From positions 49,538,001 to 49,602,000 of the forward strand of contig OZ286462.1 of assembly GCA_965644265.1 (NCBI GenBank): 64,000 bases of DNA, in the 5' to 3' direction. The notes under the pieces are model-generated. The model searched no databases and had not been told where the DNA came from. It saw only the letters and a list, made by a program, of their open reading frames with translations. Each line of letters begins with the position of its first letter. The stretch's first letter is position 1. Shown here piece by piece: positions 9,492 through 27,550 of this stretch. Position numbers and translations under genes: made by a program. Source of the stretch: Glycera tridactyla (lineage: Eukaryota).

Positions 9492-11005
9492 ATTATGTAT
9501 ACCACTATCTAAATACCTTGTCATGTATAGGAACCAAAATTTTGTTTATTTTGCCCCTTCCCTGATTCTAAGACTGAAAAGCCTGTAGACACCACTTGTT
9601 TTGAGAGACTTCTTATCATCTTCCCTTCTTCCATATGACACTCAAATATGCCTCATGTAATAATGTTTGTGAAATTTGTGAATTGTCTGTAATACTTGTA
9701 TGTATTCTGTGTTCTAGATTAGCTGGTGAAAGGTTCGGATTTGCAGTTTCTGTTGAACCCAAGAAGGTGACTGCGATGAAACTTGAACCAGAGCCTGTAG
9801 ATACAGAAGATGTCAAGGATATTGCCGAGAAAATCATAAAGAGGGATCCGGATGATAGTGATGACAGTGATGATAGCTCAGACACAGATGATATGGACAC
9901 TGTGGTAAGCTTCTTTGGGTTTCTGTCCTCACCACGCCTTTAGCCAGCCATGAGCCCTTGAGCCATTTGGTCAAGAACTTTTCCGTTTCAGCCCATGAAA
10001 ATCTGTCTAGGAGGATGAAATTCATAATAGATGAGCGAAGATATTTTGCAAAATACCTGCTGCAAACATTGTTAAACAAGTACTTATGACAGAATTTGTA
10101 CTATATTGTGGTAAATTACACCATGGCTATTTGGTAAGTTGGCTGTCCATACAAATGATGAATTAGGAACCGTTCAGCTCTGGTTTTGTGATCCTGGCTA
10201 AATCCATGGTCCTTACTATCCAGGGGTGAAATTAAAACGGTTCCGATTTAATCACAAACCACTGCAGATATTCCTCATCCTCTGCATCACTAATTCCAAC
10301 ATAGCGATGGGACAATATGTTCAAATACAGTCGAACCTCCCTATAGAGACTGCCTTCGGTTGCATCAAAAGGTGGTCTTTATAGGGAGGTGGTCTTTATA
10401 GCGAAGTCGTCTATTGTTGAAAATACTACCACGGTCACAGCTCAGGGTGGTCTTTATACGGAGGTGGTCTTTATAGAGAGGTGGTCTTTAGAGGAGGTTC
10501 GACTGTATAAGAGGCATAAAAGTAGAATCGTCATCCTGCATTCATGCATGCTTCATAACTGCATCTATTTTGCCTGTCATGAGGACTGGATATGCGCTTA
10601 TTCATAATTTATTGGTTTCTTTCAAAGCCAATTTTTTTGAATGCATTTACATTCAAGTGATCATTCAAGTCTAAGCAAAATCAACCAATTTTGGACTATG
10701 ATCACTCATTTCACTGCTAATATTATCTGAGCTATATTTGGCAGTAGGGCTGTGTATTGCCAGCCCTGTCACGATACAATACGGTTCGCGATACGGTAGT
10801 CACGATACGCAATACGTATTGCGTATTGCGATACACCCCAGGCAGTTCATTCAAGTCGGGAAAATCAATCAGGAATATGAACACTGGAGTCTCATGGAAA
10901 AGATAAATAGTAGCTTGCATTGAAAATAGCACAAATCAATTCCTCTGCCAATTCAATGATTTTTACCTCGTCTCAACGAAGTTGAGGGGAGGTATTGCGG
11001 TCACT

Positions 11006-11061
<56 letters not shown>

Positions 11062-14000: not shown

Positions 14001-17000
14001 AAAATTGGTTTTTCAGAAACAGATTTTTCTAAAGAAGGTGGCTGTCCATAGCCTTGCCATACTTGGTACAGATGTACTGTAGTCTCGCGCGTGTACGCGC
14101 AGGTTCGGACAAACGCGCATCCCCCGTTTCGTCAAAATGTCGGAATAGGCGCATGTCCTCGCGCATACGCACACCCTCGAAAAATCACGGTTGAACTGTG
14201 TGAAACCCGAAAGAATTAATGAGAAATCGATCTTTTTACTCATCCTTGTACACGAATCGCCATCTTGTATCCGTCTTCTTCGCGCATTGCATGATGGGAG
14301 ATGTTGAAAAATATTAATCGTGCGTACCTTGTTCCCTCCAACCCCAACCTCGTTCTCTATTTGGGCTATACAAATATACGATCAGAGACGGTTCTGTCGG
14401 GATTAGGGTTCGAGATCGTGAGGCATCATGGGAGAAATAAAGTTAATAATTACATCATCTAGAAAAATGGCGGCCGGGTGTTGGTAAGTGCTTCATTCCA
14501 CGTGATAGGGCGAAGAATAAAGCAAAAACCAGATAGTTTCGACAAGGTGCGCGTTTGCACGAAAGTACTATACGCGCATCTTCGGACGTACGCGCATCCC
14601 CGTTTCGTCAAAATGTCACGATTTCGCTCACTGCGCGTACACGCGCGAGACTACAGTATGTAATAGCATTCCCTGATGAATTCAAGCCATAGATGGGGTC
14701 TCCCATTAGGCCTGATTGGTTTTGGGTGAAAATTGTTTTTTCAGAAATGGATTTTTCTAAAGAAGGTCGCTGGCCATAGCCACACCATACTTGGCATAGA
14801 TGCAGTTCATAGCATTCCCTAATGAATGCTAGCCATAGATGGGGTCTCCCAACAGGCCTGGTCGGTTTTGGGGTGAAAATTGGTTTTTCAGAAATGGATT
14901 TTTCTAAAGAAGGTGGCTGTCCATAGACAGTCCAAATTTGGCATGGATGCAGTTCATAGCATTCCTTGATGAATGCTAGCCATAGATAGGGTCTCCTAAC
15001 AGGCCTGGTTGGTTTTGGTGGGAAAATTGGTTTTTCAGAAATGGATTTTTCTAAAGAAGGTGGCTGTTCATAGCCACACCATACTTGGTACAGATGTACC
15101 TAATATCATTCCCTAATGAATGCTAGCCATAGACAGGGTCTGCCATTAGGCCTGGTTGGTTTTGGTGGGAAAATTGGTTTTTCAGAAATGGATTTTCCTG
15201 AAGATGTTGGCTGTCTGTAGCCTCAGCAAACTGAGCATGGATGTAGTTCATAGCATTCCCTAATAAATGCTAGCCATAGATGGGGTCTCCTAACAGGCCT
15301 GGTTGGTTTTGGGGTGAAAATTGGTTTTTCAGAAATGGATTTTTCCAAAGAAAGTCGCTGGCCATAGCCACACCATACTTGGTACAGATGTACTTGATAG
15401 CATTCCCTAGGGATGCTAGCCATAGATGGGGTCTCCCATCAGGCCTGGTGGGTTTTGGGGTGAAAATTGTTTTTTCAGAAACAGATTTTTCTAAAGAAGG
15501 TGGCTGTCCATAGCCTTGCCATACTCGGTACAGATGTATGTAATAGCATTCCCTGATGAATTCAAGCCATAGATGGGGTCTCCCATTAGGCCTGGTGGTT
15601 TTGGGGTGAAAATTGGTCTTTCAGCAATGGATTTTTCTAAAGAAGGTGGCTGTCCATAGCCTTGCCATACTTGGTACAGATGTATGTAATAGCATTTCCT
15701 AATGAATGCTAGCCATAGATGGGGTCTCCCAACAGGCCTGGTTGGTTTTGGGGTGAAAATTGTTTCTTCAGAAATGGACTTTTCTAAAGATGTTGGCTGT
15801 CCGTAGCCACTCCAAACTTGGTACAGATGCAATTTATGTCATTCCCTAATGAATGCCAGCCAGGGATCAGGGTTCCTGACAAGGCTGATTGACTTTTGGG
15901 ACAAATGTGGATTTTCAGAAATGGATTTTTCCTAAAGATCGTCGCTGCCCCTAGCCACACACTAAACTTGACACAGATGTCTTTCATAGCATTCCTTCAC
16001 AAGTGCCTGCAATGGATGAGGACCGATGACAACCTTGTTTGTCTTTGGGGACAAAAATGTAAATGTGAACCAGACCTGACTTCTGATGTGCATCAGCTGA
16101 TGGATCCAACTTTTGTTTGAAAATTGATTTTTTTTAAAATTGATTTCCGCAGCATGAGTTGGGTCATCTATGTGTTACATATATTTGAGGCGTTCGAGTT
16201 GGCTTCGTTGAGACGAGGTCCGCCTTCAGTGAAGGCTATGTTTAATATGTATAACAACATGTCATGACTAGAAAATGGCATAAATATCAAGTGAATTGTT
16301 GATTTCCCTCTTGTTATACATCGATATAACAACATGTCAAGACTAGAAAATACTGAAATCTCATGCTTTTGACATATTTATCAACTGAATTGTTTATTTC
16401 CTCACTCAATATAAAAACGACAACTATGCGATCACTTTGGAGTGAATATAAAGAATGGAAGGAAACTAAACCACGTTGATGAAATCATGCGCAGTCTGGC
16501 AGGGGCCGAGAGTTGACGCGATAACTCATTGTTTTTCGATTTTTTTTGTGAGACGTGACAGAGAGCAAAAATAATGGCAGAAAATGAAAGATCGTGTGGA
16601 CGAGTTCCTATCTTGATAGCTCGTCCAGTGGACGAGGGGCTAAACTCACAGGGTATCTAAGATGTGTTTGGCAGCAGGGGCCCATTTCATGACTCTTGCT
16701 AACCTACCAGAAGAATGCATGCTACTGTCACTCATCAGATAAAGTAGGGGTGGAGCTCTTGCTAGTATAGATGAAATAATACTAGTCCAAAGTGTAACTG
16801 TTGCCACTCTGTGGGAGGTCACCTCAGACATGCCTGGTCACCCTAATCAGCTGGACAACCCCCTTCTGACTACCCCCACTTCATGCCCAATCCCAACCCC
16901 AGTTTAATCACAATCAAACCTGTTTCAAACATATGGCCACAGAAAGACACAAAAGTGGATTCTTAGAACAGGTACATGCTTACAGTGGAGGTGAATGGAA

Positions 17001-24939: not shown

Positions 24940-27550
24940 GGGTCATTCCATGGTATTCCGGACATGCACTTCCATTTTTCAAACTTAGTAGTCAGCTGAA
25001 ATTTTTATTCCAAATCATTGTCAACAAGTTCAAGTGTCGGGGAACAACTTCGTTCTGGTCAGAATTTGGAGACTCTGGTAGATATAGCGGTTTTGGGGAG
25101 CGTTGCGGACGGACAAATTTCATATTGCCATAACTTTGATTTGCAAAATCATACGAGTCTCAAATTTGATAACAGACATCCTTCACCTATGTTATTTATG
25201 AAAACTATTGTTTTGGTCCAGATTTTTGGAAATGTTTGAGAAAAAAAATCAATTTTTTGACAAAATAATGTCCGTCCACAACACTCAACCTTCAAAAGTT
25301 CACTTTTTTTGAAGAAATTTCAAATTGTTTTTCTCAAGACTTCAGTTCCTCTTGAAAAATGCAGAGATGATGGTAGGTGGCGAGTTATGAATGAATATCT
25401 CTGCAACTTTTTTTTTTATTAAGATTTCATCAAGTGTCCGTCCGCAAAGCCCGAAAAGCATCTATCAGCAACACTCAGTGTTTGGTAAAAAAAATCTACC
25501 AATAAAAGTTTAGCTCATTTTGGATATCACTTAAAATACTCACATTATAAAGGTCATTGATTATTCCACCCTTGACCCTTTCATGCTCAGATGATCCCCA
25601 AAATTTCATCGAAAAATGTGTCTCTCAATCACAACTTGCAACCTTGGATCTGATCATATGGTGTGACATGGGGAATATGCCGAGCAAATTTGGCATGGAG
25701 AATAACCCACTTGATTTATTGGTTGAAAACAATATGAATACTGTTGCAATGAAGGAAGGGTCGAGTGCACTCACCATGTGTTTTAATGTCTCACATCCCC
25801 CCCCCCACTCCTCCACCACACCTTGCTGAGCAAGCTAGCTGGGAGGGTGGAGTGAGTGATGAGGAGGTGACTTGTACTGAGCAGTGTAACCATGTTCACC
25901 CTATCCATATACAGTAGTTGCTCACCAAGTTGTGAGCAGATCTGGCCTAGTTGCAAGCAGTGAGCAGATCTAGGGTGAGTCCATAGGTAGATAGAGCAAC
26001 CCCCCCCCCCCCCCCTTCCCTCACAGTTAGAAGGGTGGGTGAGTAAGTGGGGAGGGGATGCATCAGGCACACTAATACCTGCAGATCATCACTAACAAGA
26101 GTCACCTGAACCATACACTTGTTCTATTGAAGAACAACTCACTCCGTGTGAATGAAACAAAAAATTGGATATTTTCATGATTTTGAGAAAAATTGGTGAA
26201 AAAGGTGAAATTTTATAAAAACAGGAGAAAAATGACAGAATGATTTCATAGAAATATCAATATGCTCCTCATCTGTAATTAATATACTTAATATAAGAAG
26301 ATATACACATGTATTTCCAGGGTATGGTAAATTATTTTAGTACACCTCACATAACAAGGATAAATGTGTCCATCCACAGCGGTCTAGTGTCCGTCCGCAA
26401 GGCACCATTTTTCCATGTTTTTCCCTGATTTTTGAGAGCTCCTGTGAAAATCTCTTTATATGTTTCAGACATGGACTGAAGATGCTCATTAGGCCCAGTT
26501 ACTGAATAATTGTCCATAAACACAGCAAAAAATGTCAGACTTAGGTGACTGGAAATTGATATTTTCCTGTTTTGGGAGAGAAAAAATCGTAAAAGGGCTA
26601 AAATGGAGTGAAAAGGGTGGGAAATGACAAAATATTCACCCAATAATACTTAAATACTCCTTAACTTTAAGCAAAAATGTACAGGAAGATATCTGAATGT
26701 TTCTCCAGGATGTGGGAAACTATTTTGGTACACCTCATGTAACGGACAGAAGTGTCCGTCCGCTACGGTCAAAAGTGTCCGTCCGCAGCGCAACATCTTT
26801 TCAGATTTTTTTTTTTTTTCGAAGCTCTAGTGAAAATCTCCATATCCATATGTTTCAGTCATGGATTGAAGTTGCTTATTATACCAAATTACTGAATTAT
26901 TGTCCATAAACAGAGCAAAAAATGTCTGACTAAGTGACTGGAAATTGACATTTTCATGATTTCGGAGAGAAAAAATTGTCAAAGGGCTAAAATTTAGTGA
27001 AAAATGATGAAATAATTATCCACAAATACTTGAATACTTGTTATCTTTAATTAAAATAGTACAGGAAGATATTTGAATGTTTTACCAGGATGTGAGAAAC
27101 AATTCTGGAACACCTCATATAGCATGGACAAAAGTGTCCGTCCGCAACGGTCAAAAGTGTCCGTCCGCAGCGCAACATTTTTTCAGATTTTTCTGAATTT
27201 TCTGGAGCTTTGGTCAAAACCACTTTTCATATGCTCTCGGCATATACTCAAGATACTTATCTAGCCCAGTTACTAAATATTTGTCTGTAAACAGAGCAAA
27301 TTTTTTTGACTTTGTGACTGTACATCAAAACCCTTGTCCCAAAAGTGTCCGTCTGCAACGGTCGGGAAAATGCCCCCACAACCAACATGTGAGAGTTAAT
27401 GATAATAAAAATGCCTGTGATATGTTGAGTCTTGTATGTATAATGAATTGGCATAGGAAAAGTTTTGGTTTGGAGTCATGTTTTATCAAGAGATCAGAAT
27501 TATGTCTGCGAAGTGTCCGTCCGCAACGGAAAAATACCATGGAATGACCC
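24940..27550. mobile_element. 2.6-kb non-autonomous TIR element with 4-bp TSD (Sola2-like) and internal repeats of about 380 bp
   Basis: 18-bp TIR GGGTCATTCCATGGTATT/AATACCATGGAATGACCC flanked by TGCA; repeated GTGTCCGTCCGC motifs; three tandem units starting near 26341, 26729 and 27109. Confidence 0.75.

Follow-up and report, generated by a model that had tools for sequence, protein, structure and literature searches.

Structure of the Element

The window analysed here, a stretch of 64,000 nucleotides from the genome of Glycera tridactyla, carries on its forward strand a bounded element of ~5.3 kb at positions 10960-16243. A Helentron-type layout had been described at 10961-16243 in a first-pass annotation, and all of the parts listed there are present, with the start placed within 1 nt of the proposed position. 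The termini read TTTTTACC... and ...GGCTATGTTT. At the 5' end, the boundary is formed by a TTTTT run (10960-10964), each position of which is kept in 30-35 of 35 copies, and this run is followed by a 17-bp subterminal inverted repeat (subTIR), ACCTCGTCTCAACGAAG, at 10965-10981. The 5' subTIR is the perfect reverse complement (17/17 bp) of the 3' subTIR at 16203-16219, as had been claimed, and both are kept across the 35 copies; the window holds two matches to the subTIR compared with 0.00 expected from shuffles. DNA folding places the 5' subTIR in a hairpin (10964-10994), also anticipated, in which it would pair with the adjoining inverted repeat GTTGAGGGGAGGTA to give a 13-bp interrupted stem (dG -12.5 kcal/mol, z -4.5) that was equalled by 0/200 shuffles.

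Downstream of the hairpin lies a microsatellite, previously given as (CGGCGT)9, for which TRF returned (CGGCGT)9.2 with 100% matches at 11007-11061; pure runs of at least two CGGCGT units occur in 31/35 copies, and the runs outside the window copy have 2-10 units. The left flank continues with two 194-bp repeats (11089-11453, TRF, 1.9 copies), found also in the other copies of the same subfamily (subfamily 1), and with a spacer (11454-11651) that is 86.8-97% identical to other copies. Beyond the central array, the right flank is conserved (15996-16202, 81.6-96% identity to other copies) and leads into the 3' subTIR. The terminal 3' hairpin of the earlier description corresponds to a palindrome, GCCTTCAGTGAAGGC, at 16222-16236, with a 6-bp stem and a 3-nt loop, 7 nt from the element end, although the fold of the region around it is modest (z -2.2). 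The closing GAAGGC of the palindrome is invariant in 35/35 copies and its 5' arm shows a single substitution in 2/35. The 3' boundary is TATGTTT (16237-16243), of which TATGT is invariant in 35/35 copies and the last two T's are kept in 33/35 and 31/35. The two ends are therefore asymmetric, with 5 nt beyond the subTIR on the left and 24 nt, including the separate palindrome, on the right.

The 147-bp Array and Its Relatives in the Flanks

The interior of the element (11652-15995) is occupied by a satellite array of 147-bp monomers, delimited by TRF and monomer typing and divided into three blocks (11652-12920, 13107-14076, and 14661-15995). Net of insertions the array measures 3,574 bp or ~24 monomers (22-24 by count), in agreement with the earlier figure of more than 3.5 kb. 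It has a pentameric higher-order repeat, as monomers five apart are 93-99% identical and neighbours 78-90%. One interruption is a nested MITE-like insertion of 186 bp with 13-bp TIRs (12921-13106), flanked by a 6-8-bp target duplication inside one monomer; removal of the insert and of one duplicate restores the monomer sequence. The other is a nested TIR element of 580 bp (14077-14656), whose 26-bp TIRs match perfectly and whose target duplication is TA. At 3.5 kb the window array is long, yet it is not exceptional in the family: by length the window copy falls at about the 80th percentile of its own subfamily, and other copies reach up to 29 kb.

We considered whether the array might be coding, and this was ruled out by the lack of 3-base periodicity in monomer variability (p 0.62) and the lack of a Pfam match for the element. 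The open reading frames at 13161-13628 and 15491-15832 are explained by the monomer itself, whose length is a multiple of 3 and whose consensus is free of stops in one minus frame. An RNA-family reading was likewise dropped, as Rfam gave no match at E values up to 0.1. Ten long ORFs of the window were also without a Pfam match. Elsewhere in the window, a 380-bp tandem repeat at 26342-27209 was considered as a second HINE and rejected, since no subTIR layout was seen on reading.

Decayed monomer-like sequence had been proposed at 11090-11660 and 15990-16140, and a monomer profile recovered part of it. Clear matches lie inside the 194-bp repeats, with E 4e-8 at 11138-11251 and E 7e-10 at 11332-11445, compared with a top score of 3.2 bits among 200 shuffles, and we conclude from the profile that the left-flank repeats are evidently distant relatives of the 147-bp monomer. 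Weak matches were obtained at 11580-11616 in the left spacer (E 0.065) and at 16002-16059 in the right flank (E 0.018). The first ~60 bp of the right flank would, on this weak match, be a decayed monomer remnant, and the proposal fails for 16060-16140, where the profile has no match.

Insertion Sites and Genomic Distribution

The element is a discrete unit inserted into T-runs at thousands of unrelated sites. Its boundaries are identical in 35 copies with unrelated outer flanks, and paralogous uninterrupted sites for five copies are T-run targets, which bears out the T-rich insertion flanks noted in the first-pass annotation. None of the 35 copies shows a non-T target duplication; a short duplication of T's only may be hidden, as both the element termini and their targets consist of T's.

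Genome-wide, two subfamilies were found, with ~1,790 copies of the window type and ~2,100 of the second, i.e., ~3,900 end pairs or about 4,000 copies. Searches for subfamily 1 returned 1,784 5' ends (29-mer including the subTIR) and 1,794 3' ends (34-mer over subTIR and palindrome), those for subfamily 2 returned 2,153 and 2,096, respectively, and reversed-pattern controls gave 0 matches in every end search. On C1, a same-strand exact 3' end accompanies 65/100 exact 5' ends of subfamily 1 (within 20 kb) and 69/100 of subfamily 2 (within 40 kb), fractions that are lower bounds because exact matches alone were listed. The median spacing between paired ends is 3.4 kb for subfamily 1 and 2.6 kb for subfamily 2, over a range of 1-29 kb; pairs 12-14 kb apart exist. 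The family is young, and its flanks have a median identity of 97.1% to the consensus.

All sampled copies contain 147-bp arrays, and one monomer family is shared by the two subfamilies, whose flanks have diverged. A monomer 33-mer has 33,008 matches in the genome, corresponding to at least 4.85 Mb or 0.24% of 2 Gb, with roughly 8 monomer matches per element end. Among 17 monomer arrays with at least one exact 33-mer in C1 0-22.7 Mb (~1% of the genome), 14 have both element ends, including a giant element scored by coordinates, and three have one end. None of the 17 stands alone, so that a classical standalone satellite is ruled out for this sample. If the element carries the satellite, its ends should co-occur around other arrays and the monomer should not be found mainly without them; the carrier reading survives because the ends do co-occur and no array in the sample lacks them.

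Two clusters on C1 have a different arrangement. At 77.206-77.220 Mb, whole elements form head-to-tail multimers with seven 3' ends and, among those listed, six 5' ends, a constant 55 bp separating one matched end motif from the next, and at 80.970-80.982 Mb several 5' ends occur with a single 3' end. The multimers and the one-3'-end cluster could be footprints of rolling-circle concatemer formation, a process for which the main argument to date comes from centromeric Helitrons of plants.

Classification

HINE/DINE-1 elements are characterized by a 5' subTIR with a complementary inverted repeat and, at the other end, a 3' subTIR ahead of a palindrome; their termini are T-runs, they contain a microsatellite and central tandem repeats, they insert into T-rich sites, and they lack coding capacity (PMC4067079, PMC7492417). 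The element has each of these: subTIRs of 17 bp near both ends, where at least 11 bp is expected, an inverted repeat next to the 5' subTIR that would form the hairpin, a microsatellite after the 5' block and then the central repeats, a palindrome between the 3' subTIR and the nearby 3' end, T strings at the termini, T-rich targets with at most a T-only duplication, and dispersed, multicopy, non-coding sequence. The sequence at 10960-16243 is thus very probably a copy of a high-copy, non-coding Helentron-type (HINE/DINE-1-like) rolling-circle family with a 147-bp central repeat, as first proposed. This classification is by structure only, because no autonomous Rep/Hel/endonuclease element could be linked to these ends. 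The genome contains 104 Helitron_like_N matches, many of them in open frames of 1,800-2,800 aa; none of the three Rep matches on C1 is near a listed element end, and none of the best 40 of 992 right-flank matches (query 16120-16243) is near a Rep match. Mobilization would occur in trans through the Rep-helicase(-endonuclease) protein of an autonomous Helentron, with transposition starting at the 5' subTIR hairpin and terminating at the 3' subTIR and palindrome.

Elements of this kind were once classed as MITEs in bivalves and insects, and a cut-and-paste MITE, i.e., a TIR-transposon derivative that contains tandem repeats, would also account for a 17-bp inverted repeat near both ends, for the absence of coding capacity, and for a T-only target duplication if there is one. 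Such an element should have terminal inverted repeats and a target duplication of fixed length, whereas here the inverted repeats are subterminal, the ends are asymmetric, and a non-T duplication is seen in 0/35 copies. As the layout moreover fits DINE-1/HINE point by point, we regard a MITE as very unlikely. Even less credence can be given to a canonical non-autonomous Helitron, for which the many Helitron_like_N Rep domains in the genome and the 3' hairpin of the element might speak. Canonical Helitrons begin with TC, end with CTRR, insert between A and T, and have no inverted repeats (PMC4067079), whereas the element has neither terminus, targets T-runs, and possesses subTIRs.

Inheritance, Growth, and Origin of the Array

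The first and last monomers of the array are conserved across copies, and the interiors consist of copy-specific dimer to pentamer higher-order repeats. Sampled copies have 2-25 monomers, apart from one with at least 145. Copies with M/L/N-type arrays are united in a single clade (100/98) of a tree inferred from flank sequence alone. In that tree, the window copy groups with its two nearest relatives, L011 and L033 (100/99), with which it shares the array start F-B-I-C-E; these have 15 monomers each compared with 22-24 in the window copy. Because array composition tracks flank phylogeny in this way, the 147-bp array travels with the element. Its length then changes via internal duplication or deletion while the first and last monomers stay fixed, the interiors gaining their copy-specific higher-order repeats. 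Unequal exchange or replication slippage, acting on the window copy itself or on the copy from which it directly descends, may have produced its extra pentamers; such expansion is inferred from sequence identities, which gene conversion could mimic. In at least one copy, the array has grown to tens of kilobases: the giant element on C1 has same-strand ends at 14,670,404 and 14,699,563, 29.2 kb apart, and reading of all but its middle 7 kb gave 21.4 kb or more of continuous array, with no fewer than 145 monomers. The mean pairwise identity of these monomers is 93.3% in a profile alignment.

As to where the satellite came from, the earlier suggestion that it arose from the interior of the element itself is supported but not proven. 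The 147-bp satellite may have been born inside the element, because the 194-bp left-flank repeats are diverged homologues of the monomer, and the lack of standalone arrays in the sample is in line with this. Alternatively, a Helentron-type carrier could have captured the repeat from a satellite already present in the genome. Uptake of host DNA, including tandem repeats, is known for Helitron-like elements (PMC12628747), and the likeness of the 194-bp repeats to the monomer gives no direction by itself. However, 0/17 sampled arrays are standalone; the sharing of one monomer family by two subfamilies with diverged flanks, and the decayed monomer relatives at both inner flank edges, which are expected of an old internal array, also argue against capture, and we consider it improbable.

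Comparison with Known Systems

The HINE-like system of oysters has the same order of parts, with a 5' subTIR and complementary inverted repeat, a microsatellite, a variable segment, satellite-like central repeats of ~140-180 bp, a 3' subTIR, and a palindrome, as well as T-rich or TT targets without target duplication and genome-wide dispersal. The comparison is one of layout, not sequence: the oyster subTIR is 11-12 bp compared with 17 bp here, and the oyster microsatellites are mostly tetramers compared with the hexamer CGGCGT. Oyster elements have a mean of 3.6 and a maximum of 29.3 monomers, whereas arrays here are much longer (at least 145 monomers in one copy), and the copy-specific higher-order repeats are a further difference. 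DINE-1/HINE elements of Drosophila, mites, and mosquitoes similarly have subTIRs a few nucleotides from the 5' end, a 5' hairpin formed by an inverted repeat, a microsatellite, central repeats, a 3' stem-loop, variable boundary T strings, and a TT target; for DINE-1, autonomous Helentron partners (Rep-helicase-endonuclease, 95-98% identical ends) are known, in contrast to the present family, to which none was linked (PMC4067079). The repeats DINE-TR1/154TR of Drosophila virilis and Cg170/HindIII of oysters are also borne by Helitron-like elements and also occur as expanded arrays, in element-associated, intermediate (one end), and standalone classes (PMC12628747, PMC11136912). The classes seen here are comparable, except that the sample contains no standalone arrays and that the 29-kb element keeps both ends. 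No paper on a 147-bp satellite linked to Helitrons was found in our literature search.

The scattering of satellite-like repeats by Helitron-like carriers is an accepted route from transposon to satellite in Drosophila and oysters. The present family is a further example of this known route, large and young, with sharp boundaries and unusually long arrays. It is tempting to speculate, albeit tentatively, that with its inherited arrays, apparent in-place expansion, and head-to-tail multimers the family may be passing through such a transition at present. The flanks provide a phylogeny against which the arrays can be read, and therefore the pace at which arrays are gained and lost, and at which higher-order repeats form, becomes directly measurable. 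For annotation of the Glycera tridactyla genome, the 147-bp "satellite" is best treated as transposon sequence when repeats are masked.

Architecture of the Element

Direct reading of window 10700-16600, combined with repeat tools, bore out the terminal layout proposed in the first-pass annotation: a 5' subTIR within a hairpin, a (CGGCGT)9 microsatellite, a perfect 17-bp 3' subTIR and a terminal hairpin. The 17-bp 5' subTIR ACCTCGTCTCAACGAAG (10965-10981, plus strand) pairs with its perfect reverse complement, the 3' subTIR at 16203-16219, and with up to two mismatches allowed the two are the sole occurrences in 64 kb, where shuffled sequence gave an expectation of 0.00. The left subTIR is held in an interrupted 13-bp hairpin (10964-10994; dG -12.5 kcal/mol, z -4.5) that 0 of 200 shuffles equalled in folding, and downstream of it lies the microsatellite, a pure (CGGCGT)9.2 tract (11007-11061). 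Two 194-bp repeats (11089-11453) and a 198-bp spacer precede the 147-bp repeats, which occupy three blocks (11652-12920, 13107-14076 and 14661-15995) and amount to 3,574 bp net, in agreement with the annotated central array of more than 3.5 kb. Downstream of the right subTIR is a palindrome with a 6-bp stem (16222-16236), directly followed by the 3' terminus TATGTTT.

The blocks are separated by two mutually unrelated insertions, a nested MITE-like element of 186 bp (12921-13106; 13-bp TIRs, 6-8-bp target duplication) and a nested TIR element of 580 bp (14077-14656; 26-bp perfect TIRs, TA duplication). Each lies in a single monomer and thus postdates amplification, making the array older than both. 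Immediately upstream of the element, a short palindromic stretch (10737-10830) with many CGATAC and GTATTGCG repeats may mark where a further insertion terminates. Elsewhere in the window, tandem units of 380 bp with AAAGTGTCCGTCCGC-type motifs in each (26342-27209; 2.3 copies, 79% matches) have no relation to the 147-bp family, and sequence reading showed no subTIR layout there.

Paired Ends and Insertion Sites

The first-pass annotation had proposed a genome search with the two ends, and we ran end patterns across the window's own 2.04-Gb assembly, with reversed-pattern controls giving 0 matches throughout. A 29-mer from the 5' hairpin and a 34-mer spanning the 3' subTIR and palindrome (subfamily 1) matched 1,784 and 1,794 times, so that ends of the window's type recur about 1,790 times. 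A second end type with the same monomer family (subfamily 2) gave 2,153 matches for its 5' 29-mer and 2,096 for its 3' 34-mer. Where the end probes align, its ends share ~91% identity with those of the window, and its 5' subTIR carries a T-to-C change that is mirrored by A-to-G in the 3' subTIR, so the outer 8 bp remain complementary. On contig C1 the ends pair on the same strand: an exact 3' end lay within 20 kb of 65 of 100 exact subfamily-1 5' ends and within 40 kb of 69 of 100 in subfamily 2, both lower bounds because exact matches alone were listed. Spacing ranged from 1.0 to 29.2 kb (medians 3.4 and 2.6 kb for subfamilies 1 and 2, respectively).

In 35 fully recovered copies, homology ran from TTTTT|ACCTCG to GAAGGCTATGTT(T), with unrelated sequence outside. 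The joined flanks of five copies (L007, L011, L019, L027, L036) aligned over the junction with paralogous repeats that lack the insertion and have a T-run at the site, confirming the T-rich insertion flanks described earlier. No target duplication of non-T bases was seen at element insertions; a T-only duplication could go unnoticed, because the element itself ends in T's, an ambiguity shared with DINE-1 (PMC4067079). Window 10960-16243 is a mobile element, and its two ends belong together.

Class Assignment

The layout agrees feature by feature with DINE-1/HINE (PMC4067079) and with the oyster Cg_HINE. A canonical Helitron was rejected, as the termini lack TC...CTRR and there is no A/T target, and a cut-and-paste MITE fits poorly, since the repeats are asymmetric and subterminal and no non-T target duplication is seen. 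Coding signals were absent from the satellite: variability along the monomer had no 3-base periodicity (p 0.62) and the consensus has stops in five of six frames. Two long minus-strand ORFs matched no Pfam family above noise, and Rfam returned no matching family.

Candidates for an autonomous element do exist in the assembly, where at least 104 Rep domains (Helitron_like_N) were counted and many of them lie within open frames of 1,800-2,800 aa. Many of the frames span 2,000-2,800 aa, and some of the domains form near-identical neighbouring pairs, e.g., at C29:54,877,199 and 54,884,957. The picture suggests recently active autonomous rolling-circle elements in this genome. None of the three Rep domains on C1 is near any listed element end, no Rep match was found near the best 40 right-flank copies, and four 12-14-kb end pairs on C1 enclose none. 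The autonomous partner is thus unlinked and the Helentron assignment a structural one, as it initially was for Cg_HINE.

Arrays, Inheritance and Growth

A conserved 33-mer of the monomer matched the genome 33,008 times at up to 3 mismatches (control 0), which puts the repeat at no less than 4.85 Mb (0.24% of the assembly). Over C1 0-22.7 Mb, exact 33-mer matches were grouped into 17 arrays, onto which the end probes were mapped. Thirteen arrays had both ends, three had one (L002, L003, L004) and one was a giant array; a one-ended "intermediate" form is known from oysters (PMC11136912). With 0 of the 17 lacking both ends, the monomer does not occur mainly without these ends in this sample, contrary to the outcome that the first-pass annotation had named as refuting its proposal.

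We took 407 monomers from 35 copies and typed them by clustering. Most subfamily-1 arrays start with F-B types and finish with K-G, so the array edges are positionally conserved. The interiors are copy-specific, with DAC trimers (L017), ICE trimers (L024, L038), DAMB tetramers (L034, L037), AC dimers (L039) or BI dimers (L020); subfamily-2 arrays carry nearly homogeneous runs of type H. Within the window copy, identity is 93-99% between monomers five positions apart versus 78-90% between neighbours, which confirmed a higher-order repeat of five monomers (~735 bp). When a maximum-likelihood tree was computed from flanks alone, with the array left out, the six copies whose arrays are of M/L/N type formed one clade (100/98), and the window copy clustered with L011 and L033 (100/99), all three sharing the array start F-B-I-C-E. 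As array type follows flank phylogeny, array composition is inherited through transposition.

L011 and L033 have 15 monomers each versus 22-24 in the window copy, the excess corresponding to extra pentamers. Because its youngest pentamer copies are 99% identical while its flanks match the family consensus at 95.5-97.5%, at least the latest duplication is probably no older than the insertion, although gene conversion could produce the same pentamer identities.

Decayed monomer-like sequence had also been proposed in the flanks. A profile of the 407 monomers matched the two 194-bp repeats of the left flank in same-strand orientation (E 4e-8 and 7e-10; 29 and 35 bits), against 3.2 bits for the best of 200 shuffled flanks. 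Marginal matches came from the right flank's first 60 bp (E 0.018) and from 11580-11616 (E 0.065), and nothing was detected at 16060-16140. These matches support older, decayed repeat units flanking the active array and a satellite native to the element, rather than an ancient capture of the monomer, which is still conceivable.

Giant, Clustered and Mixed-End Copies

At C1:14.67 Mb, a minus-strand subfamily-2 3' end (14,670,404-14,670,437) adjoins an unbroken array that has no fewer than 145 monomers (21.4 kb) and reaches the edge of the sequence read, with a mean pairwise identity of 93.3% and no clear higher-order period in the monomers read. The next same-strand subfamily-2 5' end is at 14,699,535-14,699,563. 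Between the two, the listing of exact matches has no further end of subfamily 1 or 2, placing the element's ends 29.2 kb apart, with the array read over 21.4 kb.

The stretch C1:77,206,279-77,219,836 (plus strand) has a head-to-tail series of seven 3' ends and six listed 5' ends of subfamily 2, in interspersed units of ~2.4 and 1.5 kb with a constant 55 bp from 3' motif to next 5' motif; this would be either a whole-element tandem multimer or unequal exchange between two neighbouring copies. At C1:80,969,879-80,982,277 (minus strand), four subfamily-2 5' ends spaced ~2.3-2.4 kb are flanked on one side by a 5' end and on the other by a 3' end of subfamily 1; the exact matches listed there include no 3' end of subfamily 2. 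Such a pattern, with many 5' ends and one 3' end, has been ascribed to rolling-circle amplification in plant Helitrons (PMC12628747). At C29:8,021,133-8,024,874, the right flank is present three times on one strand at ~1.8-kb spacing, with 97% identity to the window's flank in each case. L029 (C1:49,002,651-49,006,599), a recombinant or nested element, has a subfamily-1 5' end, a subfamily-2 3' end and an extra subfamily-2 5' end 431 bp inside, and the sequence flanking it aligns with the interior of other copies.

The spread of tandem repeats and seeding of satellites by such elements are established (PMC12628747, PMC11136912). Arrays in the oyster Cg_HINE families average 3.6 monomers and reach at most 29.3, in contrast to at least 145 in one copy here. 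This family stands out for the length of its arrays, for array types that clearly follow flank lineage, for higher-order repeats that differ from copy to copy between fixed edge monomers, and for a 29-kb element that keeps both ends.
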